From: Phaeosaccion multiseriatum
Taxonomy: Eukaryota > Protista > Ochrophyta, other classes
Reading direction: 5' to 3'
NCBI GenBank assembly: GCA_965112735.1
Contig: OZ218956.1
Span: 248,001-312,000 of the forward strand
DNA: 64,000 bases
A program made the translations under genes and the position numbers. This document shows, one piece after another, positions 15,446-46,173 of the stretch. The notes under the pieces are model-generated. The model was not told the DNA's origin and ran no database searches. It was given only the letters and a program-made list of their open reading frames with translations. Each line of letters begins with the position of its first letter. Positions within the stretch are counted from its first letter, which is position 1.

Positions 15446-17221
15446 TCACGCCTCCCACACGTTACGCTTTACGTAGAGCATAAACTGAACCAGGCTATCA
15501 AAAACGGAAATGGCATGCTGCACATCTCCCGGCACTGTTCCCTCCCTGAGAACATTGCCCTGCGTCTCCCAGCCGAACATGCCCATGTTAAGGTGGCCTT
15601 CCTTGAGAGCGCACACGGGTATGCCGTACTTGTAGCTCTGCGATTCCGCCGCGCCAAGCTTCTTGAGGAAGGGGATGACCATCCGGCCCTTCCCATCGGG
15701 CTGGAGCACGAGGTCCTGGAGCTCTTCGCGCACGGAAGCTTTGGGAAACGCTTGCTTTGTCATCTCGTCCGTCCCCCCGGCATTGGCGGAGACTACTGTC
15801 TTCATGAGCATGACGAAGTCAGCGACGAAGCTCGACATCGCCTTGGTGGCGCCATGCTTGCTGATCTTAATCTTGTTGACCAGGACGGGCAGCAAGACGG
15901 GCGCCTTCTTGAGGACGAAGGGGCCGAGTTCCTTTTGGAACCTGGCTCTTTCTTCGTTGGAGGAGTCCTTCCATTTTTTTCCAAGTGCCTGTTCCAACGA
16001 CGACCACTCCCTCCTCCACTCAAGCCACTTGGGCAGCACGTCGTTGAACATAGTGTGCACGCTCTGGAGGCTGTACCAGTCTGGATCGGCAGGAACTGCA
16101 AATGCACTGGTAGCCATGACGGCCGCCTGGTTCAGGCTGCCCGAGCTCGGACCCACATCCACGATGATGACGTCAAAGGCACCGTACTCGGCGAGGTAGT
16201 CGAACAGCCTGCGAAAGGCGCCGTTCCTGACGATGGCAGTCGTGGGCTCCTTCGAGACCTCCGAGAGCGTCTCAGCGTATTGGATGAGCTTGGGGCTGCC
16301 CGGCAGGATGAAGAGCCGCTCGCCGATGGAGTGCGGGGAGGTGCTCGACTTGATCGGATCAGAGATCCTGTACAGGGACACTCCCTCCGCGAGGAAGGCG
16401 CCCTTATCGCCTTCCATGATGGGCTGCAATACCTTGGCAATGTCGGGCCCGAGGCATCCTCGGTGCGAGCTGGAGATTTGCTCCATATCGAAGTTGCATT
16501 CCGCCTCCGTGTTGAGAGGGATGGAGCGAATCTCCGGTGGACCGTCCTGGACCTGGCCAGTAGCAGCAGCAGGACTGGCAGTGGCCGTGGAAGGCCTGTC
16601 CTCCTCCTCCCCGTCCTCCTCGGGTTCCACATCTTGAATGTCGTCCGCCAAAAGGCCCGTGATGTTGGTCTGCGGGTCCAGGTCCACAATGCACACTCTA
16701 CAGCGGTTGGCCGCGAACTGCCAGGCCAAATTGGCTGTCAGTGTGGAATCGCCATTGAAACAGAAGAGAGAGAGAGTGAGTGGGAACTTAGAATAGGATA
16801 GAGCAGGGCTCGGCAGCAAATGACACTCACTTGTGGTGGTGGACTTCCCTGAGCCACCCTGCGTAGATGCAGTCAGCAGTGGAACAGGCAGGGGCCAGGG
16901 GAGGGGTCAGCAAGGCCAACAAGAAGGGGAGGAGGGGAAGGAAGATCACTCAATCACCTTGAAAGTGTAGTGGGTGAGGACGAAGGCTGGGTGGCGGTGG
17001 CTGGAGGAGACGTGCGCCTTCACCTCCGGCCCCTGTCCACCATTGCGCCCATTCAGATTGGGCAAGTAGTCTGGATCGATGACAACGCACTCGCCCTTGT
17101 TGGACCGGGATCCTTTGCTCTTCTTCCTACTCTTCTGGGGCGTTGGGGCCCGCCGTTTGCCCTTCTTGTTCGACGACCCTCCGGCCCCCTTTCCCTTCTC
17201 GTTGGGAGATCCGCCATCCAT
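15446..17221 (-). CDS. ParA/Soj-family (MinD/ParA deviant Walker A) ATPase, copy 1; 3 exons, ~526 aa
   Basis: Exons 17221-16958, 16858-16831 (28 nt) and 16734-15446 splice to ...HYTFK-GGSGKSTTT-TNLAWQ... Walker A' IVDLDPQTN, Walker B FDVIIVDVGPS and the downstream LNQAAVMATSAFAVPADPDWYSLQSV are all present. Confidence 0.88.
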
Positions 17222-17511
17222 GATGTTTCCTTCTGCCCCCTGCAGCGATGCAGCTGCCCCGGCCCTGTCTGACTTTTTTTGTTTTTTGTTAAATCTTACT
17301 CTTTCCCCTTCCTAGTGGAATTAAAGAGCTCCGGGTCGACAAGGGAAGGGAATGCACGCATTCTAGCAGCTTCCCCTGCTGCCTGCTGGAAAATATAGTT
17401 CGGATTTGAGGAGTCAAGTGCGGGCAAGCGCAGACGGAAGGAGCGAGAACCAGACGAGAAAAAGCCTAATTGCTTACGGAGGAAAGATCTCCTGCTAGGA
17501 AAGAACTATCG

Positions 17512-17714
17512 CACGTGAAGAGGTCAACACGTGCGCACTATGACCACGTAGAGCCTATGGGCAGACGGAGCTCAGTAGCTCCACAGTCATTGCCCCCCCC
17601 TATCGTACAGAATGCTCTGAGCAGACGGAGCTAAGTAAAATAAATAAATAAATAAAACAAACTAACATTAGTATGGGCTAATGATGTGCATTATTAGCCC
17701 CCCATCATTAGCCC
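17512..17714. promoter_or_regulatory. Putative bidirectional ParA/kinase promoter elements
   Basis: CACGTG at 17512 and 17528; direct repeat GCAGACGGAGCT(C/A)AGTA at 17561 and 17621; inverted repeat GGGCTAATGATG (17675) against CATTATTAGCCC (17689) and CATCATTAGCCC (17703). Present in all six units. Confidence 0.35.
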
Positions 17715-18057
17715 CCCTTGCTCATAAGCCCTCCTTGCTCCCACACTCATTCAGAAGGCAGCACCAAAAAAAAATAAAAATCAAAATCGCTCGTTGACTT
17801 ACTATGCCGTCACCGTCGTCGGACAAATTCAAACTAATCTGCTTCCCCAACTGCCTTGTCTGCTTCTTTGCGCACCACCCGCGTTTCTTTATGAGGTGGT
17901 ACAGCTTCTCACTTCGAGACCTCGTCGGTCGAATGAGTTTGAAGCCAGGAGAAGCCACAGCAACGAAAATGTTACCGTAACGGAGCAATTGGAAGGAGCT
18001 TTGGAGGGGAGAAGAAGGAGGAGGACGGGACAGCAATAGTAGTAGCTAATATCGTAT

Positions 18058-19995
18058 ATGAGGGATGTAAACGTTGCAACTCCGCCACTGGACCGCAGAA
18101 GGCTGCGTACACCGGAAGGAAAGCACAGCAAGAGGGACTTCAATACAGCAACTCCTCCACAAGACCGCAGAAGGCTGCGTACACCGGTGCGAGGAGGGCG
18201 CAGCAGGGGGGATATGAAGGCCGCAACACCGCCGGCCAATGGAGGATCCCATGTTGTTCCACCTTCGCCAGAGGAGACAGTGATGCCGTGCTCCCTGGAG
18301 CAGTACCATGTCATCGAGCGCATCGGGGAAGGGTCCTTTGGAAAGGTGTATATATAGAGGGCCGAAGGAAGTACACCGGCCAGACCGTTGCTCTCAAGTT
18401 CATTAGCAAGCACGGCAAGACCGCCAAGGAGATTCGCAGCCTGCGACAAGAGATTTCCATCCTACGCGAGCTTGATCACGAGCACATCATCCTCATGCTC
18501 GACGCCTTCGAGACGGAGCGGGACTTCTGTGTAGTGACGGAGTACGCGCAAGGGGAGCTGTTCGACATCCTCAAGGACGACCTCACCCTCCCGGAGGAAA
18601 AGGTGCAGGTCATCGCCAAGCAACTTGTGCAGGCCCTGCACTACTTGCACAGCAAGCGCGTCATCCACAGAGACATGAAGCCACAGAATATTCTCATCGG
18701 GGCCCACGGAAGGGTCAAGCTCTGCGACTTTGGCTTTGCTCGGTGAGGACGCGACTGACTGACTGACTGACTGGCTGAGTGACTGAGTGACTCACTGACT
18801 CACTGACTCACTGACTCACTGACTCACTGACTGACACCCCATCGCCCCCCCTCGCAGGTCCATGAGCACCGACACTCTCGTCCTGACGAGCATCAAAGGC
18901 ACGCCTCTGTACATGGCCCCTGAGCTTGTGCGGGAGCGCCCCTACGACGAGACGGCGGACCTGTGGTCACTCGGAGTGATCCTCTACGAGCTGGCCGTGG
19001 GGAAGCCGCCCTTCTACACCACCTCGCTCTACAGCCTCATCAATCTCATCGTCAAGGACGATGTTTCCTACCCCGTCTCCCTCGGGGCCGCCTTCAAGTC
19101 CTTCCTGCAGGGGCTGCTGCACAAGGATCCCCGGCGACGGCTCACGTGGCCGACTCTGCTGGACCATCCCTTCGTCTGCGAGCAGGGGGGCAGAGGAGGC
19201 AGGTGAGGGGGAAGAGAAGCAAAGGGGTCGACGAGCGCACTCTGGACTGGGGAAGCTTTTTGTTCCGAAGGACAGGCTAAGGAGGCAAGAGGAGTGCTCG
19301 CCGAAGGTGGTGGTGCTCACAGAAGGTCATGATGATGATGATGACCGTGATGATGAGGGGGAGAAGGAGAACAGAGAGAAGAGAGAGAGCGAGGCCATGA
19401 CGAGTAGTAGAAGGACTGCTCGTGATGATGATTATAGTGGTGATTTTGTTGCTGCTGCACCTAGCAACGCCCCAGCACGTGCTCCTAGGGAGACAGAGGA
19501 GGAGGAGGAAGAGGAAGAGGGCGGAGAGATGTTCGGTGTCCGCTCGGGCCCTGGGGGGGCAGGGCCACTTCCGCAGCCAGCTGAGGCACGTGCTCGAGGG
19601 GCACCAGTTGGTGGTACGTCAGTTGGTGGTACGTCAGTTGGTGGTACGGCAGAGGGGCTGCATGAGGTGCGGCGGGAGGGGGCAGGAGCCGAGTCGGCGG
19701 AAGGAGGAGGGGCGGCGGCACAGGGATATGCATGAGGAAGGTCGTGAGGATTAGGACCACGACAAGGAGGAGCAGGAGGGGGAGGAGGAAGGAGATGTGC
19801 TGCTGCAAGCCCTTCGAACGGCAAGGAGGGTGGCAGGGGCATGCGTCGGGCTTCACAGTTGCAGCGGGCTCGACCGTACCCAAGGGGAGATTCCCCAGGG
19901 AGGCAGCAGCAGCCTCGACCCCGGGGTGAGGGGCGGGGAGGAAGACGAAGACGCTGCTGCCGCCGACCTGTTTGCGTCTTTCAGGGCACTTTTCC
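18058..19995 (+). pseudogene. Truncated, frameshifted Fused/STK36 kinase fragment, copy 1
   Basis: Compared with the intact gene at 43037: TATA and C insertions after GEGSFGKVY create TAG at 18355-18357; an 86-bp deletion with AGAGG microhomology; truncation at the unit junction. Confidence 0.9.
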
Positions 19996-19996
19996 T

Positions 19997-20233
19997 GTGG
20001 AGGGCCTGGCTAAGCTGTACAGCGAGCCCACCGTCGTGGAGAGCACCAGCCTCATCCTCGGTGTGGGCCTGGACCTGTTCGGCACTCGCGTGGTGCCCTC
20101 GCGCCCCTTCGACCTGCTGTCCTCGGAGTTCAACTACAGCTTCCTGTGCATTGTCGTGGTGGCCCTTGTGGTGGTGGCGGGCATGGCCGACCGTTTCGTC
20201 AAACAGAGGGCCCTGCTCGCGGCCTGGGCGTGA
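19997..20233 (+). pseudogene. Duplicated EMC1 3' tail fragment (also at 25242-25478, 30490-30726, 35736-35972, 40983-41219)
   Basis: Last 78 codons of EMC1 (VEGLAKLY...LLAAWA*) with three synonymous differences from the native gene; no promoter or start of its own. Confidence 0.9.
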
Positions 20234-20691
20234 GGGAGGGGCTTTTGTTCTTCTCTACGAATGCACTACAGCGCTTTGGATAGCGCGGAGGGATTGGCTG
20301 CAGTGGCGGGGCAGCTGAGGAGGACGCGAGGGAGGGGATGGGGCTAACGTGTGGCAAAGCGTTCCAACACTGGGAAATGCCTCTTTCTTTTTAGTTAGAA
20401 TCAATTAATTTTAAAAAGAGTATGCTAATGCTACGCTGTTTTTATAACTTCCTGCTCTGATGTTTGAGCACCTTGCTTGGGTGGCACAACACACCACGGA
20501 GCGTGTGCGATCTATCCTCCCTGACCTAACTGCTCTTGAAACTGTTCCTGAGAACCCCCCCCCCCCCCTCCCTTCTTATAGCAATCCAAACCCCACCACC
20601 AAGAGGGCGGCCGCAAACTTGCCGAATGAATTGGCACAGTCTTGCTGAAGGCAAAACTCACCACTCAGGCTCCTCTGTCCTTCGTACTCGC

Positions 20692-22468
20692 TCACGCCTC
20701 CCACACGTTACGCTTTACGTAGAGCATAAACTGAACCAGGCTATCAAAAACGGAAATGGCATGCTGCACATCTCCCGGCACTGTTCCCTCCCTGAGAACA
20801 TTGCCCTGCGTCTCCCAGCCGAACATGCCCATGTTAAGGTGGCCTTCCTTGAGAGCGCACACGGGTATGCCGTACTTGTAGCTCTGCGATTCCGCCGCGC
20901 CAAGCTTCTTGAGGAAGGGGATGACCATCCGGCCCTTCCCATCGGGCTGGAGCACGAGGTCCTGGAGCTCTTCGCGCACGGAAGCTTTGGGAAACGCTTG
21001 CTTTGTCATCTCGTCCGTCCCCCCGGCATTGGCGGAGACTACTGTCTTCATGAGCATGACGAAGTCAGCGACGAAGCTCGACATCGCCTTGGTGGCGCCA
21101 TGCTTGCTGATCTTAATCTTGTTGACCAGGACGGGCAGCAAGACGGGCGCCTTCTTGAGGACGAAGGGGCCGAGTTCCTTTTGGAACCTGGCTCTTTCTT
21201 CGTTGGAGGAGTCCTTCCATTTTTTTCCAAGTGCCTGTTCCAACGACGACCACTCCCTCCTCCACTCAAGCCACTTGGGCAGCACGTCGTTGAACATAGT
21301 GTGCACGCTCTGGAGGCTGTACCAGTCTGGATCGGCAGGAACTGCAAATGCACTGGTAGCCATGACGGCCGCCTGGTTCAGGCTGCCCGAGCTCGGACCC
21401 ACATCCACGATGATGACGTCAAAGGCACCGTACTCGGCGAGGTAGTCGAACAGCCTGCGAAAGGCGCCGTTCCTGACGATGGCAGTCGTGGGCTCCTTCG
21501 AGACCTCCGAGAGCGTCTCAGCGTATTGGATGAGCTTGGGGCTGCCCGGCAGGATGAAGAGCCGCTCGCCGATGGAGTGCGGGGAGGTGCTCGACTTGAT
21601 CGGATCAGAGATCCTGTACAGGGACACTCCCTCCGCGAGGAAGGCGCCCTTATCGCCTTCCATGATGGGCTGCAATACCTTTGGCAATGTCGGGCCCGAG
21701 GCATCCTCGGTGCGAGCTGGAGATTTGCTCCATATCGAAGTTGCATTCCGCCTCCGTGTTGAGAGGGATGGAGCGAATCTCCGGTGGACCGTCCTGGACC
21801 TGGCCAGTAGCAGCAGCAGGACTGGCAGTGGCCGTGGAAGGCCTGTCCTCCTCCTCCCCGTCCTCCTCGGGTTCCACATCTTGAATGTCGTCCGCCAAAA
21901 GGCCCGTGATGTTGGTCTGCGGGTCCAGGTCCACAATGCACACTCTACAGCGGTTGGCCGCGAACTGCCAGGCCAAATTGGCTGTCAGTGTGGAATCGCC
22001 ATTGAAACAGAAGAGAGAGAGAGTGAGTGGGAACTTAGAATAGGATAGAGCAGGGCTCGGCAGCAAATGACACTCACTTGTGGTGGTGGACTTCCCTGAG
22101 CCACCCTGCGTAGATGCAGTCAGCAGTGGAACAGGCAGGGGCCAGGGGAGGGGTCAGCAAGGCCAACAAGAAGGGGAGGAGGGGAAGGAAGATCACTCAA
22201 TCACCTTGAAAGTGTAGTGGGTGAGGACGAAGGCTGGGTGGCGGTGGCTGGAGGAGACGTGCGCCTTCACCTCCGGCCCCTGTCCACCATTGCGCCCATT
22301 CAGATTGGGCAAGTAGTCTGGATCGATGACAACGCACTCGCCCTTGTTGGACCGGGATCCTTTGCTCTTCTTCCTACTCTTCTGGGGCGTTGGGGCCCGC
22401 CGTTTGCCCTTCTTGTTCGACGACCCTCCGGCCCCCTTTCCCTTCTCGTTGGGAGATCCGCCATCCAT
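20692..22468 (-). CDS. ParA-like ATPase, copy 2 (1-nt insertion frameshift near 21681; sequencing error or new pseudogene)
   Basis: Identical to copy 1 except TACCTTTGG versus TACCTTGG, which splits exon 3 into ORFs 21650..22066 and 20692..21936. Confidence 0.7.
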
Positions 22469-23302
22469 GATGTTTCCTTCTGCCCCCTGCAGCGATGCAG
22501 CTGCCCCGGCCCTGTCTGACTTTTTTTGTTTTTTGTTAAATCTTACTCTTTCCCCTTCCTAGTGGAATTAAAGAGCTCCGGGTCGACAAGGGAAGGGAAT
22601 GCACGCATTCTAGCAGCTTCCCCTGCTGCCTGCTGGAAAATATAGTTCGGATTTGAGGAGTCAAGTGCGGGCAAGCGCAGACGGAAGGAGCGAGAACCAG
22701 ACGAGAAAAAGCCTAATTGCTTACGGAGGAAAGATCTCCTGCTAGGAAAGAACTATCGCACGTGAAGAGGTCAACACGTGCGCACTATGACCACGTAGAG
22801 CCTATGGGCAGACGGAGCTCAGTAGCTCCACAGTCATTGCCCCCCTATCGTACAGAATGCTCTGAGCAGACGGAGCTAAGTAAAATAAATAAATAAATAA
22901 AACAAACTAACATTAGTATGGGCTAATGATGTGCATTATTAGCCCCCCATCATTAGCCCCCCTTGCTCATAAGCCCTCCTTGCTCCCACACTCATTCAGA
23001 AGGCAGCACCAAAAAAAAATAAAAATCAAAATCGCTCGTTGACTTACTATGCCGTCACCGTCGTCGGACAAATTCAAACTAATCTGCTTCCCCAACTGCC
23101 TTGTCTGCTTCTTTGCGCACCACCCGCGTTTCTTTATGAGGTGGTACAGCTTCTCACTTCGAGACCTCGTCGGTCGAATGAGTTTGAAGCCAGGAGAAGC
23201 CACAGCAACGAAAATGTTACCGTAACGGAGCAATTGGAAGGAGCTTTGGAGGGGAGAAGAAGGAGGAGGACGGGACAGCAATAGTAGTAGCTAATATCGT
23301 AT

Positions 23303-25240
23303 ATGAGGGATGTAAACGTTGCAACTCCGCCACTGGACCGCAGAAGGCTGCGTACACCGGAAGGAAAGCACAGCAAGAGGGACTTCAATACAGCAACTCC
23401 TCCACAAGACCGCAGAAGGCTGCGTACACCGGTGCGAGGAGGGCGCAGCAGGGGGGATATGAAGGCCGCAACACCGCCGGCCAATGGAGGATCCCATGTT
23501 GTTCCACCTTCGCCAGAGGAGACAGTGATGCCGTGCTCCCTGGAGCAGTACCATGTCATCGAGCGCATCGGGGAAGGGTCCTTTGGAAAGGTGTATATAT
23601 AGAGGGCCGAAGGAAGTACACCGGCCAGACCGTTGCTCTCAAGTTCATTAGCAAGCACGGCAAGACCGCCAAGGAGATTCGCAGCCTGCGACAAGAGATT
23701 TCCATCCTACGCGAGCTTGATCACGAGCACATCATCCTCATGCTCGACGCCTTCGAGACGGAGCGGGACTTCTGTGTAGTGACGGAGTACGCGCAAGGGG
23801 AGCTGTTCGACATCCTCAAGGACGACCTCACCCTCCCGGAGGAAAAGGTGCAGGTCATCGCCAAGCAACTTGTGCAGGCCCTGCACTACTTGCACAGCAA
23901 GCGCGTCATCCACAGAGACATGAAGCCACAGAATATTCTCATCGGGGCCCACGGAAGGGTCAAGCTCTGCGACTTTGGCTTTGCTCGGTGAGGACGCGAC
24001 TGACTGACTGACTGACTGGCTGAGTGACTGAGTGACTCACTGACTCACTGACTCACTGACTCACTGACTCACTGACTGACACCCCATCGCCCCCCCTCGC
24101 AGGTCCATGAGCACCGACACTCTCGTCCTGACGAGCATCAAAGGCACGCCTCTGTACATGGCCCCTGAGCTTGTGCGGGAGCGCCCCTACGACGAGACGG
24201 CGGACCTGTGGTCACTCGGAGTGATCCTCTACGAGCTGGCCGTGGGGAAGCCGCCCTTCTACACCACCTCGCTCTACAGCCTCATCAATCTCATCGTCAA
24301 GGACGATGTTTCCTACCCCGTCTCCCTCGGGGCCGCCTTCAAGTCCTTCCTGCAGGGGCTGCTGCACAAGGATCCCCGGCGACGGCTCACGTGGCCGACT
24401 CTGCTGGACCATCCCTTCGTCTGCGAGCAGGGGGGCAGAGGAGGCAGGTGAGGGGGGAAGAGAAGCAAAGGGGTCGACGAGCGCACTCTGGACTGGGGAA
24501 GCTTTTTGTTCCGAAGGACAGGCTAAGGAGGCAAGAGGAGTGCTCGCCGAAGGTGGTGGTGCTCACAGAAGGTCATGATGATGATGATGACCGTGATGAT
24601 GAGGGGGAGAAGGAGAACAGAGAGAAGAGAGAGAGCGAGGCCATGACGAGTAGTAGAAGGACTGCTCGTGATGATGATTATAGTGGTGATTTTGTTGCTG
24701 CTGCACCTAGCAACGCCCCAGCACGTGCTCCTAGGGAGACAGAGGAGGAGGAGGAAGAGGAAGAGGGCGGAGAGATGTTCGGTGTCCGCTCGGGCCCTGG
24801 GGGGGCAGGGCCACTTCCGCAGCCAGCTGAGGCACGTGCTCGAGGGGCACCAGTTGGTGGTACGTCAGTTGGTGGTACGTCAGTTGGTGGTACGGCAGAG
24901 GGGCTGCATGAGGTGCGGCGGGAGGGGGCAGGAGCCGAGTCGGCGGAAGGAGGAGGGGCGGCGGCACAGGGATATGCATGAGGAAGGTCGTGAGGATTAG
25001 GACCACGACAAGGAGGAGCAGGAGGGGGAGGAGGAAGGAGATGTGCTGCTGCAAGCCCTTCGAACGGCAAGGAGGGTGGCAGGGGCATGCGTCGGGCTTC
25101 ACAGTTGCAGCGGGCTCGACCGTACCCAAGGGGAGATTCCCCAGGGAGGCAGCAGCAGCCTCGACCCCGGGGTGAGGGCGGGGAGGAAGACGAAGACGCT
25201 GCTGCCGCCGACCTGTTTGCGTCTTTCAGGGCACTTTTCC
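23303..25240 (+). pseudogene. Truncated Fused/STK36 kinase fragment, copy 2
   Basis: Same premature TAG (23600-23602) and deletion as copy 1. Confidence 0.9.
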
Positions 25241-25936
25241 TGTGGAGGGCCTGGCTAAGCTGTACAGCGAGCCCACCGTCGTGGAGAGCACCAGCCTCAT
25301 CCTCGGTGTGGGCCTGGACCTGTTCGGCACTCGCGTGGTGCCCTCGCGCCCCTTCGACCTGCTGTCCTCGGAGTTCAACTACAGCTTCCTGTGCATTGTC
25401 GTGGTGGCCCTTGTGGTGGTGGCGGGCATGGCCGACCGTTTCGTCAAACAGAGGGCCCTGCTCGCGGCCTGGGCGTGAGGGAGGGGCTTTTGTTCTTCTC
25501 TACGAATGCACTACAGCGCTTTGGATAGCGCGGAGGGATTGGCTGCAGTGGCGGGGCAGCTGAGGAGGACGCGAGGGAGGGGATGGGGCTAACGTGTGGC
25601 AAAGCGTTCCAACACTGGGAAATGCCTCTTTCTTTTTAGTTAGAATCAATTAATTTTAAAAAGAGTATGCTAATGCTACGCTGTTTTTATAACTTCCTGC
25701 TCTGATGTTTGAGCACCTTGCTTGGGTGGCACAACACACCACGGAGCGTGTGCGATCTATCCTCCCTGACCTAACTGCTCTTGAAACTGTTCCTGAGAAC
25801 CCCCCCCCCCCCCTCCCTTCTTATAGCAATCCAAACCCCACCACCAAGAGGGCGGCCGCAAACTTGCCGAATGAATTGGCACAGTCTTGCTGAAGGCAAA
25901 ACTCACCACTCAGGCTCCTCTGTCCTTCGTACTCGC

Positions 25937-27712
25937 TCACGCCTCCCACACGTTACGCTTTACGTAGAGCATAAACTGAACCAGGCTATCAAAAACGGAA
26001 ATGGCATGCTGCACATCTCCCGGCACTGTTCCCTCCCTGAGAACATTGCCCTGCGTCTCCCAGCCGAACATGCCCATGTTAAGGTGGCCTTCCTTGAGAG
26101 CGCACACGGGTATGCCGTACTTGTAGCTCTGCGATTCCGCCGCGCCAAGCTTCTTGAGGAAGGGGATGACCATCCGGCCCTTCCCATCGGGCTGGAGCAC
26201 GAGGTCCTGGAGCTCTTCGCGCACGGAAGCTTTGGGAAACGCTTGCTTTGTCATCTCGTCCGTCCCCCCGGCATTGGCGGAGACTACTGTCTTCATGAGC
26301 ATGACGAAGTCAGCGACGAAGCTCGACATCGCCTTGGTGGCGCCATGCTTGCTGATCTTAATCTTGTTGACCAGGACGGGCAGCAAGACGGGCGCCTTCT
26401 TGAGGACGAAGGGGCCGAGTTCCTTTTGGAACCTGGCTCTTTCTTCGTTGGAGGAGTCCTTCCATTTTTTTCCAAGTGCCTGTTCCAACGACGACCACTC
26501 CCTCCTCCACTCAAGCCACTTGGGCAGCACGTCGTTGAACATAGTGTGCACGCTCTGGAGGCTGTACCAGTCTGGATCGGCAGGAACTGCAAATGCACTG
26601 GTAGCCATGACGGCCGCCTGGTTCAGGCTGCCCGAGCTCGGACCCACATCCACGATGATGACGTCAAAGGCACCGTACTCGGCGAGGTAGTCGAACAGCC
26701 TGCGAAAGGCGCCGTTCCTGACGATGGCAGTCGTGGGCTCCTTCGAGACCTCCGAGAGCGTCTCAGCGTATTGGATGAGCTTGGGGCTGCCCGGCAGGAT
26801 GAAGAGCCGCTCGCCGATGGAGTGCGGGGAGGTGCTCGACTTGATCGGATCAGAGATCCTGTACAGGGACACTCCCTCCGCGAGGAAGGCGCCCTTATCG
26901 CCTTCCATGATGGGCTGCAATACCTTGGCAATGTCGGGCCCGAGGCATCCTCGGTGCGAGCTGGAGATTTGCTCCATATCGAAGTTGCATTCCGCCTCCG
27001 TGTTGAGAGGGATGGAGCGAATCTCCGGTGGACCGTCCTGGACCTGGCCAGTAGCAGCAGCAGGACTGGCAGTGGCCGTGGAAGGCCTGTCCTCCTCCTC
27101 CCCGTCCTCCTCGGGTTCCACATCTTGAATGTCGTCCGCCAAAAGGCCCGTGATGTTGGTCTGCGGGTCCAGGTCCACAATGCACACTCTACAGCGGTTG
27201 GCCGCGAACTGCCAGGCCAAATTGGCTGTCAGTGTGGAATCGCCATTGAAACAGAAGAGAGAGAGAGTGAGTGGGAACTTAGAATAGGATAGAGCAGGGC
27301 TCGGCAGCAAATGACACTCACTTGTGGTGGTGGACTTCCCTGAGCCACCCTGCGTAGATGCAGTCAGCAGTGGAACAGGCAGGGGCCAGGGGAGGGGTCA
27401 GCAAGGCCAACAAGAAGGGGAGGAGGGGAAGGAAGATCACTCAATCACCTTGAAAGTGTAGTGGGTGAGGACGAAGGCTGGGTGGCGGTGGCTGGAGGAG
27501 ACGTGCGCCTTCACCTCCGGCCCCTGTCCACCATTGCGCCCATTCAGATTGGGCAAGTAGTCTGGATCGATGACAACGCACTCGCCCTTGTTGGACCGGG
27601 ATCCTTTGCTCTTCTTCCTACTCTTCTGGGGCGTTGGGGCCCGCCGTTTGCCCTTCTTGTTCGACGACCCTCCGGCCCCCTTTCCCTTCTCGTTGGGAGA
27701 TCCGCCATCCAT
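25937..27712 (-). CDS. ParA-like ATPase, copy 3 (intact)
   Basis: Same exons and translation as copy 1. Confidence 0.88.
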
Positions 27713-28548
27713 GATGTTTCCTTCTGCCCCCTGCAGCGATGCAGCTGCCCCGGCCCTGTCTGACTTTTTTTGTTTTTTGTTAAATCTTACTCTTTCCCCT
27801 TCCTAGTGGAATTAAAGAGCTCCGGGTCGACAAGGGAAGGGAATGCACGCATTCTAGCAGCTTCCCCTGCTGCCTGCTGGAAAATATAGTTCGGATTTGA
27901 GGAGTCAAGTGCGGGCAAGCGCAGACGGAAGGAGCGAGAACCAGACGAGAAAAAGCCTAATTGCTTACGGAGGAAAGATCTCCTGCTAGGAAAGAACTAT
28001 CGCACGTGAAGAGGTCAACACGTGCGCACTATGACCACGTAGAGCCTATGGGCAGACGGAGCTCAGTAGCTCCACAGTCATTGCCCCCCCCTATCGTACA
28101 GAATGCTCTGAGCAGACGGAGCTAAGTAAAATAAATAAATAAATAAAACAAACTAACATTAGTATGGGCTAATGATGTGCATTATTAGCCCCCCATCATT
28201 AGCCCCCCTTGCTCATAAGCCCTCCTTGCTCCCACACTCATTCAGAAGGCAGCACCAAAAAAAAATAAAAATAAAAATCGCTCGTTGACTTACTATGCCG
28301 TCACCGTCGTCGGACAAATTCAAACTAATCTGCTTCCCCAACTGCCTTGTCTGCTTCTTTGCGCACCACCCGCGTTTCTTTATGAGGTGGTACAGCTTCT
28401 CACTTCGAGACCTCGTCGGTCGAATGAGTTTGAAGCCAGGAGAAGCCACAGCAACGAAAATGTTACCGTAACGGAGCAATTGGAAGGAGCTTTGGAGGGG
28501 AGAAGAAGGAGGAGGACGGGACAGCAATAGTAGTAGCTAATATCGTAT

Positions 28549-30488
28549 ATGAGGGATGTAAACGTTGCAACTCCGCCACTGGACCGCAGAAGGCTGCGTA
28601 CACCGGAAGGAAAGCACAGCAAGAGGGACTTCAATACAGCAACTCCTCCACAAGACCGCAGAAGGCTGCGTACACCGGTGCGAGGAGGGCGCAGCAGGGG
28701 GGATATGAAGGCCGCAACACCGCCGGCCAATGGAGGATCCCATGTTGTTCCACCTTCGCCAGAGGAGACAGTGATGCCGTGCTCCCTGGAGCAGTACCAT
28801 GTCATCGAGCGCATCGGGGAAGGGTCCTTTGGAAAGGTGTATATATAGAGGGCCGAAGGAAGTACACCGGCCAGACCGTTGCTCTCAAGTTCATTAGCAA
28901 GCACGGCAAGACCGCCAAGGAGATTCGCAGCCTGCGACAAGAGATTTCCATCCTACGCGAGCTTGATCACGAGCACATCATCCTCATGCTCGACGCCTTC
29001 GAGACGGAGCGGGACTTCTGTGTAGTGACGGAGTACGCGCAAGGGGAGCTGTTCGACATCCTCAAGGACGACCTCACCCTCCCGGAGGAAAAGGTGCAGG
29101 TCATCGCCAAGCAACTTGTGCAGGCCCTGCACTACTTGCACAGCAAGCGCGTCATCCACAGAGACATGAAGCCACAGAATATTCTCATCGGGGCCCACGG
29201 AAGGGTCAAGCTCTGCGACTTTGGCTTTGCTCGGTGAGGACGCGACTGACTGACTGACTGACTGGCTGAGTGACTGAGTGACTCACTGACTCACTGACTC
29301 ACTGACTCACTGACTCACTGACTGACACCCCATCGCCCCCCCTCGCAGGTCCATGAGCACCGACACTCTCGTCCTGACGAGCATCAAAGGCACGCCTCTG
29401 TACATGGCCCCTGAGCTTGTGCGGGAGCGCCCCTACGACGAGACGGCGGACCTGTGGTCACTCGGAGTGATCCTCTACGAGCTGGCCGTGGGGAAGCCGC
29501 CCTTCTACACCACCTCGCTCTACAGCCTCATCAATCTCATCGTCAAGGACGATGTTTCCTACCCCGTCTCCCTCGGGGCCGCCTTCAAGTCCTTCCTGCA
29601 GGGGCTGCTGCACAAGGATCCCCGGCGACGGCTCACGTGGCCGACTCTGCTGGACCATCCCTTCGTCTGCGAGCAGGGGGGGCAGAGGAGGCAGGTGAGG
29701 GGGGAAGAGAAGCAAAGGGGTCGACGAGCGCACTCTGGACTGGGGAAGCTTTTTGTTCCGAAGGACAGGCTAAGGAGGCAAGAGGAGTGCTCGCCGAAGG
29801 TGGTGGTGCTCACAGAAGGTCATGATGATGATGATGACCGTGATGATGAGGGGGAGAAGGAGAACAGAGAGAAGAGAGAGAGCGAGGCCATGACGAGTAG
29901 TAGAAGGACTGCTCGTGATGATGATTATAGTGGTGATTTTGTTGCTGCTGCACCTAGCAACGCCCCAGCACGTGCTCCTAGGGAGACAGAGGAGGAGGAG
30001 GAAGAGGAAGAGGGCGGAGAGATGTTCGGTGTCCGCTCGGGCCCTGGGGGGGCAGGGCCACTTCCGCAGCCAGCTGAGGCACGTGCTCGAGGGGCACCAG
30101 TTGGTGGTACGTCAGTTGGTGGTACGTCAGTTGGTGGTACGGCAGAGGGGCTGCATGAGGTGCGGCGGGAGGGGGCAGGAGCCGAGTCGGCGGAAGGAGG
30201 AGGGGCGGCGGCACAGGGATATGCATGAGGAAGGTCGTGAGGATTAGGACCACGACAAGGAGGAGCAGGAGGGGGAGGAGGAAGGAGATGTGCTGCTGCA
30301 AGCCCTTCGAACGGCAAGGAGGGTGGCAGGGGCATGCGTCGGGCTTCACAGTTGCAGCGGGCTCGACCGTACCCAAGGGGAGATTCCCCAGGGAGGCAGC
30401 AGCAGCCTCGACCCCGGGGTGAGGGGCGGGGAGGAAGACGAAGACGCTGCTGCCGCCGACCTGTTTGCGTCTTTCAGGGCACTTTTCC
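28549..30488 (+). pseudogene. Truncated Fused/STK36 kinase fragment, copy 3
   Basis: Same premature TAG (28846-28848) and deletion. Confidence 0.9.
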
Positions 30489-31184
30489 TGTGGAGGGCCT
30501 GGCTAAGCTGTACAGCGAGCCCACCGTCGTGGAGAGCACCAGCCTCATCCTCGGTGTGGGCCTGGACCTGTTCGGCACTCGCGTGGTGCCCTCGCGCCCC
30601 TTCGACCTGCTGTCCTCGGAGTTCAACTACAGCTTCCTGTGCATTGTCGTGGTGGCCCTTGTGGTGGTGGCGGGCATGGCCGACCGTTTCGTCAAACAGA
30701 GGGCCCTGCTCGCGGCCTGGGCGTGAGGGAGGGGCTTTTGTTCTTCTCTACGAATGCACTACAGCGCTTTGGATAGCGCGGAGGGATTGGCTGCAGTGGC
30801 GGGGCAGCTGAGGAGGACGCGAGGGAGGGGATGGGGCTAACGTGTGGCAAAGCGTTCCAACACTGGGAAATGCCTCTTTCTTTTTAGTTAGAATCAATTA
30901 ATTTTAAAAAGAGTATGCTAATGCTACGCTGTTTTTATAACTTCCTGCTCTGATGTTTGAGCACCTTGCTTGGGTGGCACAACACACCACGGAGCGTGTG
31001 CGATCTATCCTCCCTGACCTAACTGCTCTTGAAACTGTTCCTGAGAACCCCCCCCCCCCCCTCCCTTCTTATAGCAATCCAAACCCCACCACCAAGAGGG
31101 CGGCCGCAAACTTGCCGAATGAATTGGCACAGTCTTGCTGAAGGCAAAACTCACCACTCAGGCTCCTCTGTCCTTCGTACTCGC

Positions 31185-32960
31185 TCACGCCTCCCACACG
31201 TTACGCTTTACGTAGAGCATAAACTGAACCAGGCTATCAAAAACGGAAATGGCATGCTGCACATCTCCCGGCACTGTTCCCTCCCTGAGAACATTGCCCT
31301 GCGTCTCCCAGCCGAACATGCCCATGTTAAGGTGGCCTTCCTTGAGAGCGCACACGGGTATGCCGTACTTGTAGCTCTGCGATTCCGCCGCGCCAAGCTT
31401 CTTGAGGAAGGGGATGACCATCCGGCCCTTCCCATCGGGCTGGAGCACGAGGTCCTGGAGCTCTTCGCGCACGGAAGCTTTGGGAAACGCTTGCTTTGTC
31501 ATCTCGTCCGTCCCCCCGGCATTGGCGGAGACTACTGTCTTCATGAGCATGACGAAGTCAGCGACGAAGCTCGACATCGCCTTGGTGGCGCCATGCTTGC
31601 TGATCTTAATCTTGTTGACCAGGACGGGCAGCAAGACGGGCGCCTTCTTGAGGACGAAGGGGCCGAGTTCCTTTTGGAACCTGGCTCTTTCTTCGTTGGA
31701 GGAGTCCTTCCATTTTTTTCCAAGTGCCTGTTCCAACGACGACCACTCCCTCCTCCACTCAAGCCACTTGGGCAGCACGTCGTTGAACATAGTGTGCACG
31801 CTCTGGAGGCTGTACCAGTCTGGATCGGCAGGAACTGCAAATGCACTGGTAGCCATGACGGCCGCCTGGTTCAGGCTGCCCGAGCTCGGACCCACATCCA
31901 CGATGATGACGTCAAAGGCACCGTACTCGGCGAGGTAGTCGAACAGCCTGCGAAAGGCGCCGTTCCTGACGATGGCAGTCGTGGGCTCCTTCGAGACCTC
32001 CGAGAGCGTCTCAGCGTATTGGATGAGCTTGGGGCTGCCCGGCAGGATGAAGAGCCGCTCGCCGATGGAGTGCGGGGAGGTGCTCGACTTGATCGGATCA
32101 GAGATCCTGTACAGGGACACTCCCTCCGCGAGGAAGGCGCCCTTATCGCCTTCCATGATGGGCTGCAATACCTTGGCAATGTCGGGCCCGAGGCATCCTC
32201 GGTGCGAGCTGGAGATTTGCTCCATATCGAAGTTGCATTCCGCCTCCGTGTTGAGAGGGATGGAGCGAATCTCCGGTGGACCGTCCTGGACCTGGCCAGT
32301 AGCAGCAGCAGGACTGGCAGTGGCCGTGGAAGGCCTGTCCTCCTCCTCCCCGTCCTCCTCGGGTTCCACATCTTGAATGTCGTCCGCCAAAAGGCCCGTG
32401 ATGTTGGTCTGCGGGTCCAGGTCCACAATGCACACTCTACAGCGGTTGGCCGCGAACTGCCAGGCCAAATTGGCTGTCAGTGTGGAATCGCCATTGAAAC
32501 AGAAGAGAGAGAGAGTGAGTGGGAACTTAGAATAGGATAGAGCAGGGCTCGGCAGCAAATGACACTCACTTGTGGTGGTGGACTTCCCTGAGCCACCCTG
32601 CGTAGATGCAGTCAGCAGTGGAACAGGCAGGGGCCAGGGGAGGGGTCAGCAAGGCCAACAAGAAGGGGAGGAGGGGAAGGAAGATCACTCAATCACCTTG
32701 AAAGTGTAGTGGGTGAGGACGAAGGCTGGGTGGCGGTGGCTGGAGGAGACGTGCGCCTTCACCTCCGGCCCCTGTCCACCATTGCGCCCATTCAGATTGG
32801 GCAAGTAGTCTGGATCGATGACAACGCACTCGCCCTTGTTGGACCGGGATCCTTTGCTCTTCTTCCTACTCTTCTGGGGCGTTGGGGCCCGCCGTTTGCC
32901 CTTCTTGTTCGACGACCCTCCGGCCCCCTTTCCCTTCTCGTTGGGAGATCCGCCATCCAT
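31185..32960 (-). CDS. ParA-like ATPase, copy 4 (intact)
   Basis: Same exons and translation as copy 1. Confidence 0.88.
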
Positions 32961-33796
32961 GATGTTTCCTTCTGCCCCCTGCAGCGATGCAGCTGCCCCG
33001 GCCCTGTCTGACTTTTTTTGTTTTTTGTTAAATCTTACTCTTTCCCCTTCCTAGTGGAATTAAAGAGCTCCGGGTCGACAAGGGAAGGGAATGCACGCAT
33101 TCTAGCAGCTTCCCCTGCTGCCTGCTGGAAAATATAGTTCGGATTTGAGGAGTCAAGTGCGGGCAAGCGCAGACGGAAGGAGCGAGAACCAGACGAGAAA
33201 AAGCCTAATTGCTTACGGAGGAAAGATCTCCTGCTAGGAAAGAACTATCGCACGTGAAGAGGTCAACACGTGCGCACTATGACCACGTAGAGCCTATGGG
33301 CAGACGGAGCTCAGTAGCTCCACAGTCATTGCCCCCCCCTATCGTACAGAATGCTCTGAGCAGACGGAGCTAAGTAAAATAAATAAATAAATAAAACAAA
33401 CTAACATTAGTATGGGCTAATGATGTGCATTATTAGCCCCCCATCATTAGCCCCCCTTGCTCATAAGCCCTCCTTGCTCCCACACTCATTCAGAAGGCAG
33501 CACCAAAAAAAAATAAAAATCAAAATCGCTCGTTGACTTACTATGCCGTCACCGTCGTCGGACAAATTCAAACTAATCTGCTTCCCCAACTGCCTTGTCT
33601 GCTTCTTTGCGCACCACCCGCGTTTCTTTATGAGGTGGTACAGCTTCTCACTTCGAGACCTCGTCGGTCGAATGAGTTTGAAGCCAGGAGAAGCCACAGC
33701 AACGAAAATGTTACCGTAACGGAGCAATTGGAAGGAGCTTTGGAGGGGAGAAGAAGGAGGAGGACGGGACAGCAATAGTAGTAGCTAATATCGTAT

Positions 33797-35734
33797 ATGA
33801 GGGATGTAAACGTTGCAACTCCGCCACTGGACCGCAGAAGGCTGCGTACACCGGAAGGAAAGCACAGCAAGAGGGACTTCAATACAGCAACTCCTCCACA
33901 AGACCGCAGAAGGCTGCGTACACCGGTGCGAGGAGGGCGCAGCAGGGGGGATATGAAGGCCGCAACACCGCCGGCCAATGGAGGATCCCATGTTGTTCCA
34001 CCTTCGCCAGAGGAGACAGTGATGCCGTGCTCCCTGGAGCAGTACCATGTCATCGAGCGCATCGGGGAAGGGTCCTTTGGAAAGGTGTATATATAGAGGG
34101 CCGAAGGAAGTACACCGGCCAGACCGTTGCTCTCAAGTTCATTAGCAAGCACGGCAAGACCGCCAAGGAGATTCGCAGCCTGCGACAAGAGATTTCCATC
34201 CTACGCGAGCTTGATCACGAGCACATCATCCTCATGCTCGACGCCTTCGAGACGGAGCGGGACTTCTGTGTAGTGACGGAGTACGCGCAAGGGGAGCTGT
34301 TCGACATCCTCAAGGACGACCTCACCCTCCCGGAGGAAAAGGTGCAGGTCATCGCCAAGCAACTTGTGCAGGCCCTGCACTACTTGCACAGCAAGCGCGT
34401 CATCCACAGAGACATGAAGCCACAGAATATTCTCATCGGGGCCCACGGAAGGGTCAAGCTCTGCGACTTTGGCTTTGCTCGGTGAGGACGCGACTGACTG
34501 ACTGACTGACTGGCTGAGTGACTGAGTGACTCACTGACTCACTGACTCACTGACTCACTGACTCACTGACTGACACCCCATCGCCCCCCCTCGCAGGTCC
34601 ATGAGCACCGACACTCTCGTCCTGACGAGCATCAAAGGCACGCCTCTGTACATGGCCCCTGAGCTTGTGCGGGAGCGCCCCTACGACGAGACGGCGGACC
34701 TGTGGTCACTCGGAGTGATCCTCTACGAGCTGGCCGTGGGGAAGCCGCCCTTCTACACCACCTCGCTCTACAGCCTCATCAATCTCATCGTCAAGGACGA
34801 TGTTTCCTACCCCGTCTCCCTCGGGGCCGCCTTCAAGTCCTTCCTGCAGGGGCTGCTGCACAAGGATCCCCGGCGACGGCTCACGTGGCCGACTCTGCTG
34901 GACCATCCCTTCGTCTGCGAGCAGGGGGGCAGAGGAGGCAGGTGAGGGGGGAAGAGAAGCAAAGGGGTCGACGAGCGCACTCTGGACTGGGGAAGCTTTT
35001 TGTTCCGAAGGACAGGCTAAGGAGGCAAGAGGAGTGCTCGCCGAAGGTGGTGGTGCTCACAGAAGGTCATGATGATGATGATGACCGTGATGATGAGGGG
35101 GAGAAGGAGAACAGAGAGAAGAGAGAGAGCGAGGCCATGACGAGTAGTAGAAGGACTGCTCGTGATGATGATTATAGTGGTGATTTTGTTGCTGCTGCAC
35201 CTAGCAACGCCCCAGCACGTGCTCCTAGGGAGACAGAGGAGGAGGAGGAAGAGGAAGAGGGCGGAGAGATGTTCGGTGTCCGCTCGGGCCCTGGGGGGCA
35301 GGGCCACTTCCGCAGCCAGCTGAGGCACGTGCTCGAGGGGCACCAGTTGGTGGTACGTCAGTTGGTGGTACGTCAGTTGGTGGTACGGCAGAGGGGCTGC
35401 ATGAGGTGCGGCGGGAGGGGGCAGGAGCCGAGTCGGCGGAAGGAGGAGGGGCGGCGGCACAGGGATATGCATGAGGAAGGTCGTGAGGATTAGGACCACG
35501 ACAAGGAGGAGCAGGAGGGGGAGGAGGAAGGAGATGTGCTGCTGCAAGCCCTTCGAACGGCAAGGAGGGTGGCAGGGGCATGCGTCGGGCTTCACAGTTG
35601 CAGCGGGCTCGACCGTACCCAAGGGGAGATTCCCCAGGGAGGCAGCAGCAGCCTCGACCCCGGGGTGAGGGGCGGGGAGGAAGACGAAGACGCTGCTGCC
35701 GCCGACCTGTTTGCGTCTTTCAGGGCACTTTTCC
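33797..35734 (+). pseudogene. Truncated Fused/STK36 kinase fragment, copy 4
   Basis: Same premature TAG (34094-34096) and deletion. Confidence 0.9.
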
Positions 35735-36430
35735 TGTGGAGGGCCTGGCTAAGCTGTACAGCGAGCCCACCGTCGTGGAGAGCACCAGCCTCATCCTCGG
35801 TGTGGGCCTGGACCTGTTCGGCACTCGCGTGGTGCCCTCGCGCCCCTTCGACCTGCTGTCCTCGGAGTTCAACTACAGCTTCCTGTGCATTGTCGTGGTG
35901 GCCCTTGTGGTGGTGGCGGGCATGGCCGACCGTTTCGTCAAACAGAGGGCCCTGCTCGCGGCCTGGGCGTGAGGGAGGGGCTTTTGTTCTTCTCTACGAA
36001 TGCACTACAGCGCTTTGGATAGCGCGGAGGGATTGGCTGCAGTGGCGGGGCAGCTGAGGAGGACGCGAGGGAGGGGATGGGGCTAACGTGTGGCAAAGCG
36101 TTCCAACACTGGGAAATGCCTCTTTCTTTTTAGTTAGAATCAATTAATTTTAAAAAGAGTATGCTAATGCTACGCTGTTTTTATAACTTCCTGCTCTGAT
36201 GTTTGAGCACCTTGCTTGGGTGGCACAACACACCACGGAGCGTGTGCGATCTATCCTCCCTGACCTAACTGCTCTTGAAACTGTTCCTGAGAACCCCCCC
36301 CCCCCCCTCCCTTCTTATAGCAATCCAAACCCCACCACCAAGAGGGCGGCCGCAAACTTGCCGAATGAATTGGCACAGTCTTGCTGAAGGCAAAACTCAC
36401 CACTCAGGCTCCTCTGTCCTTCGTACTCGC

Positions 36431-38206
36431 TCACGCCTCCCACACGTTACGCTTTACGTAGAGCATAAACTGAACCAGGCTATCAAAAACGGAAATGGCA
36501 TGCTGCACATCTCCCGGCACTGTTCCCTCCCTGAGAACATTGCCCTGCGTCTCCCAGCCGAACATGCCCATGTTAAGGTGGCCTTCCTTGAGAGCGCACA
36601 CGGGTATGCCGTACTTGTAGCTCTGCGATTCCGCCGCGCCAAGCTTCTTGAGGAAGGGGATGACCATCCGGCCCTTCCCATCGGGCTGGAGCACGAGGTC
36701 CTGGAGCTCTTCGCGCACGGAAGCTTTGGGAAACGCTTGCTTTGTCATCTCGTCCGTCCCCCCGGCATTGGCGGAGACTACTGTCTTCATGAGCATGACG
36801 AAGTCAGCGACGAAGCTCGACATCGCCTTGGTGGCGCCATGCTTGCTGATCTTAATCTTGTTGACCAGGACGGGCAGCAAGACGGGCGCCTTCTTGAGGA
36901 CGAAGGGGCCGAGTTCCTTTTGGAACCTGGCTCTTTCTTCGTTGGAGGAGTCCTTCCATTTTTTTCCAAGTGCCTGTTCCAACGACGACCACTCCCTCCT
37001 CCACTCAAGCCACTTGGGCAGCACGTCGTTGAACATAGTGTGCACGCTCTGGAGGCTGTACCAGTCTGGATCGGCAGGAACTGCAAATGCACTGGTAGCC
37101 ATGACGGCCGCCTGGTTCAGGCTGCCCGAGCTCGGACCCACATCCACGATGATGACGTCAAAGGCACCGTACTCGGCGAGGTAGTCGAACAGCCTGCGAA
37201 AGGCGCCGTTCCTGACGATGGCAGTCGTGGGCTCCTTCGAGACCTCCGAGAGCGTCTCAGCGTATTGGATGAGCTTGGGGCTGCCCGGCAGGATGAAGAG
37301 CCGCTCGCCGATGGAGTGCGGGGAGGTGCTCGACTTGATCGGATCAGAGATCCTGTACAGGGACACTCCCTCCGCGAGGAAGGCGCCCTTATCGCCTTCC
37401 ATGATGGGCTGCAATACCTTGGCAATGTCGGGCCCGAGGCATCCTCGGTGCGAGCTGGAGATTTGCTCCATATCGAAGTTGCATTCCGCCTCCGTGTTGA
37501 GAGGGATGGAGCGAATCTCCGGTGGACCGTCCTGGACCTGGCCAGTAGCAGCAGCAGGACTGGCAGTGGCCGTGGAAGGCCTGTCCTCCTCCTCCCCGTC
37601 CTCCTCGGGTTCCACATCTTGAATGTCGTCCGCCAAAAGGCCCGTGATGTTGGTCTGCGGGTCCAGGTCCACAATGCACACTCTACAGCGGTTGGCCGCG
37701 AACTGCCAGGCCAAATTGGCTGTCAGTGTGGAATCGCCATTGAAACAGAAGAGAGAGAGAGTGAGTGGGAACTTAGAATAGGATAGAGCAGGGCTCGGCA
37801 GCAAATGACACTCACTTGTGGTGGTGGACTTCCCTGAGCCACCCTGCGTAGATGCAGTCAGCAGTGGAACAGGCAGGGGCCAGGGGAGGGGTCAGCAAGG
37901 CCAACAAGAAGGGGAGGAGGGGAAGGAAGATCACTCAATCACCTTGAAAGTGTAGTGGGTCAGGACGAAGGCTGGGTGGCGGTGGCTGGAGGAGACGTGC
38001 GCCTTCACCTCCGGCCCCTGTCCACCATTGCGCCCATTCAGATTGGGCAAGTAGTCTGGATCGATGACAACGCACTCGCCCTTGTTGGACCGGGATCCTT
38101 TGCTCTTCTTCCTACTCTTCTGGGGCGTTGGGGCCCGCCGTTTGCCCTTCTTGTTCGACGACCCTCCGGCCCCCTTTCCCTTCTCGTTGGGAGATCCGCC
38201 ATCCAT
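36431..38206 (-). CDS. ParA-like ATPase, copy 5 (intact)
   Basis: Same translation as copy 1; one synonymous SNP at 37961. Confidence 0.88.

Positions 38207-46135: not shown

Positions 46136-46173
<38 letters not shown>

Follow-up and report, generated by a model that had tools for sequence, protein, structure and literature searches.

The window analysed here is a stretch of 64,000 nucleotides from the alga Phaeosaccion multiseriatum (NCBI GenBank assembly GCA_965112735.1, contig OZ218956.1, positions 248,001 to 312,000 of the forward strand), and all coordinates below are positions in this window. Its middle part is occupied by a tandem array, each young unit of which carries a gene for a ParA-like ATPase between a 3′ end of EMC1 and a 5′ part of a Fused/STK36-type kinase gene. 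The array was detected by self-BLAST of the assembled window as a direct repeat with a unit of 5,245-5,248 bp, present in about 5.1 units at 14752-41599 with 99.6-99.8% identity. A preliminary description of this locus had reported a five-fold tandem amplification; five near-identical copies are present, and a sixth, diverged unit exists in addition. The main elements of the array are as follows:

14752 to 41599, no strand: array of near-identical 5.25-kb units, with starts at 14752, 19997, 25242, 30490, 35736 and 40983
40983 to 45043, no strand: sixth, older unit, 2.6-2.7% diverged and without unit positions 15372-16617 (about 1.25 kb)
19988 to 20005, no strand: unit junction, with the kinase side ..CACTTTTCC and the EMC1 side TGTGGAGGGCC..
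17222 to 18282, no strand: intergenic region between the divergent ParA-like and kinase genes, in every unit, with short direct repeats only

The five copies are young, and just 14 variable sites were found in the unit alignment, eight of which are indels of 1-2 nt that mostly fall in short homopolymers (C or G). Copies 1-5 differ from one another by substitutions at 0-0.11%, and any of them differs from copy 6 at 2.6-2.7%; the sixth unit matches unit positions 16619-19995 at 95-96% when gaps are counted (BLAST). The differences of the sixth unit are patchy, and none is found where it corresponds to 14752-15117 and 17007-17781; these two segments are suggestive of gene-conversion tracts. Junctions 1/2 and 5/6 are identical in sequence with a microhomology of at most about 2 nt, and no variable site lies at the remaining junctions in the unit alignment. 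The unit ends fall within host genes and terminal repeats are absent; the array is therefore no mobile element. When the unit was scanned with Rfam and for tRNAs, no RNA genes were detected as cargo. The intergenic region at 17222-18282 is presumed to be a shared promoter of the ParA-like gene and the kinase. A 56-nt direct repeat, present twice with 82% identity at a distance of 72 nt (18060-18187), is located just upstream of the kinase start codon in every unit.

The copy number could be read as an artefact of assembly, with the real locus holding fewer units (perhaps two, one intact and one diverged) or some other number. The copies differ mostly by short indels, which are typical of long-read error. 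However, some variants are common to subsets of the copies (A at 17782 in copies 3 and 5; an additional G at 19184, found in copies 3 and 6), which speaks for separate DNA templates. Moreover, long reads can span an array of 26 kb with 5-kb units, and the diverged sixth unit independently shows at least one real duplication. An artefactual copy number is hence considered distinctly unlikely.

Gene model and state of the ParA-like copies

The copies of the ParA-like gene were located and classified as follows:

15446 to 17221, minus strand: copy 1, intact (predicted exon 1 at 16958-17221, micro-exon at 16831-16858 and exon 3 at 15446-16734 including the stop)
20692 to 22468, minus strand: copy 2, frameshifted by one additional nucleotide at 21680 (TT to TTT on the plus strand), which leads to a stop beyond residue 109 of exon 3
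25937 to 27712, minus strand: copy 3, intact, with 100% protein identity
31185 to 32960, minus strand: copy 4, intact, with the same protein
36431 to 38206, minus strand: copy 5, intact, with one synonymous change, in exon 1
41602 to 42206, minus strand: copy 6, pseudogene, with the P-loop GGPVKSTTT, an in-frame TGA early in exon 3 and the remainder of exon 3 deleted

In copy 1, exon 1 runs from the ATG at 17221 to 16958 (88 codons) and is followed by an intron of 99 nt (GTGATT..GCAG), a micro-exon of 28 nt at 16858-16831 that encodes GGSGKSTTT, a second intron of 96 nt (GTGAGT..ACAG) and exon 3 at 16734-15446 (428 residues). Both introns are of the GT..AG type, and the predicted join reads ..YTFK-GGSGKSTTT-TNLAW..VDLDPQ..IIVDVGP. 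Among the aligned relatives, conservation of N-x-K-G-G-V-x-K, immediately before the NLA motif, reaches at least 90%. Homology requires a KGGxGK[ST] piece between Y-x-F-K and NLA, and this is precisely what the micro-exon provides; its splicing is thus strongly, although indirectly, supported by homology together with the splice consensus. The gene is presumably spliced in this manner and expressed in vivo. At the level of sequence, the locus therefore reads as the preliminary description had proposed, namely, as two GT-AG introns around a micro-exon that restores the P-loop. The GC content at third codon positions (GC3) of the gene is 0.77 and equals that of the neighbouring host genes.

In total, copies 1, 3, 4 and 5 are intact and encode an identical protein, copy 2 is frameshifted and copy 6 is a pseudogene. 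The frameshift of copy 2 could be a real mutation or an assembly error. The ParA-like gene had been described as the only intact gene of the amplification, and this holds in the sense that it is the sole gene wholly inside the unit; however, copy 2 is frameshifted, copy 6 is dead, and both EMC1 and the kinase are intact at the array ends.

The remnant in copy 6 was also compared with the young copies over the P-loop region (41684-41991 versus 16699-17006), where 15 of 113 exon bases and three of 195 intron bases differ (Fisher p 4e-5); this region was picked after inspection, and no significant excess is seen once all of the comparable 5′ part is counted (p 0.2). Nearly all of the coding differences in the P-loop region alter the amino acid. 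Copy 6 retains the family-conserved N before [YF]-K, and the intact copies have T at this position.

Family, fold and relatives of the encoded protein

All searches and the folding were performed with exon 3 alone (428 residues), and the P-loop was outside every query. Exon 3 matches the Pfam family AAA_31 (E 1.3e-10, 42 bits against a cut-off of 27), and no NBP35 (PF10609), Get3/ArsA (PF02374) or MinD model of Pfam was matched. The NCBIfam equivalogs scored far under their cut-offs (ParA_partition, 23.7 versus 180 bits; partition_RepA, 22.8 versus 348 bits). Given the predicted splice, the deviant Walker A motif xKGGxGK[ST] with its N-terminal signature lysine is present across exon 1 and the micro-exon. 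Exon 3 contains VDLDPQ (switch I / Walker A′) and VIIVDVGP (Walker B), and the alignment columns of its residues D17, D19, Q21 and D192 are invariant or nearly so. Among PDB entries, 3PG5 (DIP2308 of Corynebacterium diphtheriae) is the best match by sequence (E 5e-9), and Soj and ParA come next at E >0.01.

The AlphaFold (AF2) model of exon 3, built with an 89-row alignment, has a mean per-residue confidence (pLDDT) of 86.4 and a predicted template-modelling score (pTM) of 0.85, and an insert at about residues 30-60 is disordered in the model. Foldseek ranked 3PG5 first, followed by McdA, Soj and ParA; the top 31 matches (E up to 0.001) are ParA-family ATPases, MinD is placed at rank 41, and no NBP35 or Get3 occurs among the 50 matches listed. 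In the relatives, AAA_31 outscores the NBP35/Get3/MinD-type models by at least 15 orders of magnitude. By family and by predicted fold, the protein is shown to be a ParA/Soj-type deviant Walker A ATPase. The preliminary description had named it so and had specified beforehand that an ordinary NBP35/MinD/GET3 gene would speak against this assignment; the AAA_31 match and the fold matches to 3PG5, Soj and ParA bear the assignment out, and neither Pfam nor the fold ranking points to those other families. In a PADLOC scan for defence systems, exon 3 had no match, and the bacterial relatives had non-specific P-loop matches only.

A word-based protein search with exon 3 returned bacterial proteins only (about 335 residues, 23-30% identity), and its profile version was swamped by bacterial P-loop words; eukaryotic relatives surfaced only in an exhaustive HMMER search. 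This search yielded 582 relatives, and the best of these are longer, eukaryotic proteins with 33-35% identity. The named algal relatives include those of Hanusia phi (a cryptophyte, EP00960_P063448), Chlorella vulgaris (KAL4856330.1, annotated 'Soj'), Chlamydomonas euryale (EP00955_P077682) and Cymbomonas tetramitiformis, which has three genes (KAK3236596.1, KAK3284245.1 and KAK3235361.1). Further named relatives are from Mesostigma viride (Mesvir1 Mv00956-RA), the haptophyte Tisochrysis lutea and the labyrinthulid Hondaea fermentalgiana (GBG30230.1, annotated 'ParA'). The homologues of Chlorella, Cymbomonas and Hondaea are in nuclear contigs, where ordinary genes flank those of Chlorella and Hondaea. 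Those of Chlorella and Cymbomonas carry introns, and the Hondaea gene is longer than its coding length. The motifs Y-N-[YF]-KGG, LLPGS, VDxGPS, LPFLV and MVxPF are common to the clade.

In a maximum-likelihood tree of 91 rows, a bacterial branch was separated from a long clade with a support of 100/99, and the long clade comprises all named eukaryotes and the window's protein. The latter falls inside a 60-row set (support 90/97), its placement within the set being unresolved. Exon 3 scored 252 bits against a eukaryote-side profile that was built without the window's protein and 127 bits against the bacterial-side profile. A first quick tree was discarded, because a constrained tree was 40 log-likelihood units higher and its search was thus suboptimal. 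On this sequence evidence, the ParA-like gene is a resident eukaryotic gene and is shown to belong to a eukaryotic clade that is old and uncharacterised; the clade covers green algae, cryptophytes, haptophytes and stramenopiles, and is placed by the tree as sister to the bacterial DIP2308 (PDB 3PG5) branch. The family may plausibly descend from bacteria, but such an ancestry would be old. In the literature, no paper on a eukaryotic ParA-like family was found.

One of the Cymbomonas homologues (L092:6001-8139) has an intron that splits the first glycine codon of KGG in phase 1; it is located 1 nt from intron 1 of the window's gene, which lies between K and G in phase 0, and both introns begin with GTGATT. 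No intron was found near the P-loop in the Chlorella and Hondaea genes. Two ParA-like domains are combined in one chain in some relatives (P0011, P0012, P0013, P0015 and P0044), among them the Hanusia phi protein. The first Walker A motif of the Hanusia protein is degenerate (KGGVYKS), and P0044 keeps both Walker A motifs. One relative is located between long terminal repeat (LTR) retroelements, and one eukaryote-side relative (P0024) is fused to a Ulp1/SUMO-protease domain (Peptidase_C48), which hints weakly at a nuclear role or at a connection with mobile elements.

The preliminary description had regarded the gene as horizontally acquired. In the sense of a recent transfer, this is contradicted by the host-like GC3, by a best bacterial identity of only about 30% to exon 3 and by the position of the protein on the eukaryote side of the tree, where the eukaryote-side profile is ahead of the bacterial one by 125 bits. 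The bacterial relatives are distributed over many phyla with 22-43% identity over the best aligned segment, and no close donor is found among them; two scans of viral contigs found no relative. A recent transfer from bacteria, or a selfish or mobile element with its own partition ATPase, would agree with the bacterial-type fold and motifs, and the protease fusion of one relative and the retroelement neighbours of another could be counted in favour of such an origin. However, two predicted spliceosomal introns, a position between EMC1 and the Fused kinase, and unit ends in host genes with no terminal repeats are contrary to it, and an origin of this kind is highly improbable.

The bacterial sister branch has a characteristic neighbour. 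In four unrelated contigs that were read, a gene with AlbA_2 (Schlafen-type) and HATPase_c_4 domains immediately precedes the bacterial gene, which overlaps its end, the overlap being 4 nt in three of the four loci. When a profile of this neighbour was applied to 80 bacterial genome loci from many phyla, 68 were found to have it upstream, in most cases with both genes on one strand. The two genes appear to be fused in one locus (L056). An AlbA_2-HATPase_c_4-like gene was not found in the window or in two eukaryotic contigs, and no paper was found on an operon of AlbA_2 and ParA or on the function of DIP2308/3PG5. The nearest bacterial kin of the protein is thus an uncharacterised DIP2308/3PG5-type branch, not the ParABS partition proteins. 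Chromosome and plasmid partition, which the preliminary description had taken as the reference function, is consequently not supported, since the nearest bacterial branch pairs with AlbA_2-HATPase_c_4 and not with ParB. In agreement with that description, no ParB domain was found among the open reading frames (ORFs) of the window that were scanned, and the ParA-like gene stands alone between EMC1 and the kinase. The missing ParB is expected from the pairing of the sister branch and says little.

Edge genes and formation of the array

The genes at the two edges of the array and their partial copies were identified as follows:

13408 to 14988, plus strand: 3′ part of the sole complete EMC1 gene (Pfam EMC1_C, E 1.7e-62)
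19997 to 20233, 25242 to 25478, 30490 to 30726, 35736 to 35972 and 40983 to 41219, plus strand: EMC1 stubs, which repeat the EMC1 3′ end
18283 to 19996, plus strand: 5′ fragment of a Fused/STK36-type kinase gene in copy 1 (likewise in copies 2-5), frameshifted and cut off at the unit end
43271 to 49185, plus strand: intact Fused-type kinase gene, which starts in copy 6 and has an intron at 43729-43835 and HEAT/ARM repeats downstream, with exons modelled to 44150

The last 237 nt of EMC1 (14752-14988) form the start of the repeat unit, and the native EMC1 end differs from all stubs by three synonymous differences. In copies 1-5, the kinase fragment reads GKVY-I-stop at the TATATATAG site, with a TAG at 18355-18357 in copy 1 and the same stop in copies 2-5. 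When 18346-18357 is compared with 43336-43345, the TATATATAG run of copies 1-5 stands against TATAGAGGG in the intact copy, and the alignment contains a 5-nt gap and three substitutions; the few bases that copies 1-5 have in excess here produce both the frameshift and the stop. The nonsense-mutated kinase of the preliminary description is found in copies 1-5, where it is also frameshifted, but the kinase is intact in copy 6; the EMC1 stub of that description recurs in the units after the first. Each of the three genes (EMC1, ParA-like and kinase) retains at least one good copy. The kinase intron at 18746-18859, in every unit, consists nearly entirely of short repeats of the CTGA or CACTGA type between GTGAGG and CGCAG.

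The whole locus is probably best read as a young tandem segmental duplication in an algal nuclear genome, which multiplied the gene of a ParA/Soj-type ATPase from an old family. A founding duplication would have linked a site within the Fused-kinase gene to one within the last EMC1 exon. By unequal crossing-over, the 5.25-kb unit would then have been multiplied and homogenised, which gave five near-identical copies, while the unit at the array edge, the last one, may have drifted. Identical junctions without useful microhomology fit one founding non-homologous duplication that was followed by unequal crossing-over. Only the ParA-like gene was multiplied, because it is the sole gene wholly inside the unit and the complete EMC1 and kinase genes remain at the left and right edges, respectively.

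Several observations weigh against parts of this interpretation. The indels in homopolymer runs (eight of the 14 differences) may be sequencing errors, and some of the copy structure could be a product of assembly. The intact copies have T and S beside the P-loop, where more than 90% of the relatives have N and V. The window's protein is on a long branch (1.26), and the approximately unbiased (AU) test does not reject a very basal position beside the bacterial clade (p 0.39). Unlabelled metagenome proteins make up most rows of the 'eukaryotic' clade. Even the best relative reaches an identity of only about 35% in the stretches that were matched, and no orthologue was found for a test of purifying selection.

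The amplification is likely to have been neutral in origin. From the sole rise in dosage of the ParA-like gene, the preliminary description had argued for selection or selfish drive; this rise follows simply from where the duplication breakpoints fell. Dosage selection could nevertheless have driven the amplification and maintained five copies. Four copies encode an identical protein and each is complete with its 5′ and 3′ flanks, the kinase fragments carried along are disabled, and the near-identity of the copies would fit a recent sweep as well as ongoing homogenisation. Set against these features, no gene other than the ParA-like one fits inside the unit, a frameshift is already present in one young copy out of five and the older copy is fully decayed. 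The evidence available here does not distinguish selection from neutral unequal crossing-over, and adaptive amplification is judged unlikely, with neutral expansion preferred. As a genome feature, the array is thus an ordinary young segmental amplification in which the edge genes survive in one complete copy each.

Outside the array, the window contains ordinary-looking fragments of flanking genes, namely, a nucleoside transporter (8318-9916), a phosphoribosyltransferase (49620-50300) and an Obg-type GTPase (57958-58746). Microsatellites and minisatellites were also observed, including a (CACT)n of 120 units (1389-1869), a 40-nt repeat (47519-47678), a 51-nt repeat (54439-54599) and a (TCC)37 at the window end (63888-63998).

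Possible role and comparison with known systems

The catalytic motifs of ATP-sandwich dimers are all present in the predicted protein, i.e. the signature lysine, the P-loop lysine, the DxD of switch I and the Walker B aspartate. By analogy with other ParA-type ATPases, the protein would form an ATP-sandwich dimer and act as a nucleotide-dependent switch. Relatives with two domains and a degenerate first Walker A motif are what a protein that works as a dimer would show, and the layout of the Hanusia protein recalls the pseudo-dimer design of ArsA/Get3.

Exon 1 contains 14 lysine or arginine (K/R) residues among residues 9-42 and fits the classical pattern of a bipartite nuclear localisation signal (NLS), K19K20-X11-RKKSK, as the preliminary description had noted from its Lys/Arg-rich character. 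Acidic residues are present in this exon, and it has no hydrophobic signal peptide as read from the sequence. Some but not all relatives likewise have a basic N-terminus, namely those of Hondaea, Cymbomonas and Mesostigma and several without a label. The K/R-rich tail at the N-terminus probably directs the protein to the nucleus or onto DNA or chromatin, and a nuclear or DNA-associated, ATP-switched dimer is the favoured reading.

Known eukaryotic proteins of the ParA/MinD type mostly act in organelles, and most of the named relatives are from plastid-bearing algae. An organelle protein, such as a plastid or mitochondrial factor for DNA or division similar to MinD, might therefore be considered. 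However, secondary plastids need a hydrophobic signal peptide, and the N-terminus described above has none and instead carries acidic residues and a K/R cluster that fits the NLS pattern. Hondaea is non-photosynthetic, and this labyrinthulid also has the family; in addition, MinD came only 41st in the fold search. An organellar location is consequently quite improbable.

ParA-type ATPases organise DNA and large cargos in bacteria. It is conceivable, though speculative and on balance doubtful, that algae and protists keep a nuclear, chromatin- or DNA-associated family of ParA-type ATPases, sister to the bacterial AlbA_2-linked branch, with an ATP-driven positioning or switching task that has no counterpart in animals, fungi and plants, and that its copy number at this locus is changing under selection. 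Irrespective of this proposal, a conserved, intron-bearing and probably nuclear ParA-type branch is present in several algal and protist lineages, and no published function was found for it. The locus provides a clean gene model for this eukaryotic branch. The array represents a natural dosage series (from zero to five copies within one array) that could be used for testing the role of the protein, and the AlbA_2-HATPase_c_4 link of the bacterial sister branch suggests a partner to look for in eukaryotes.

Compared with known systems, the protein is most similar to the DIP2308/3PG5 family (about 335 aa), which is the best PDB match by both sequence and fold. The two are colinear over the whole length, including VDxGPxxGxxN and a C-terminal extension beyond the core ParA fold. 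The identity is only 22-30%, and the algal protein adds a disordered acidic insert after DLDPQ, other inserts and the 88-residue K/R-rich N-terminal exon. The bacterial genes have the AlbA_2-HATPase_c_4 neighbour, whereas nothing like it was found in the window.

The annotated eukaryotic homologues belong to the same clade by tree and profile score, share its motifs and are nuclear genes. Their identity to the window's protein is at most about 35%, and none is an orthologue. The window's gene has its P-loop on a 28-nt micro-exon, whereas some homologues, such as that of Hanusia, have two domains, and the five-fold tandem array was seen for the window's gene only.

The Soj/ParA proteins of ParABS systems (PDB 2BEK, 6IUB and 8RAY) share the deviant Walker A motif with the signature lysine, the DxDPQ motif, the Walker B aspartate and the core fold. 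In contrast to them, the algal protein has an extra C-terminal domain of about 170 residues, scores far below the ParA_partition cut-off and is accompanied by no ParB among the ORFs scanned in the window. MinD, NBP35/Cfd1/Ind1 and Get3/ArsA belong to the same broad P-loop class with a deviant Walker A motif, but exon 3 matches none of their Pfam models. McdA (PDB 6NOP and 6NON), which positions carboxysomes, is the second-best structural neighbour and exemplifies a ParA-type ATPase that positions a non-DNA cargo; it differs from the algal protein in its low identity (14%), in that no McdB-like partner is known for the latter and in that the algal family extends to a labyrinthulid.

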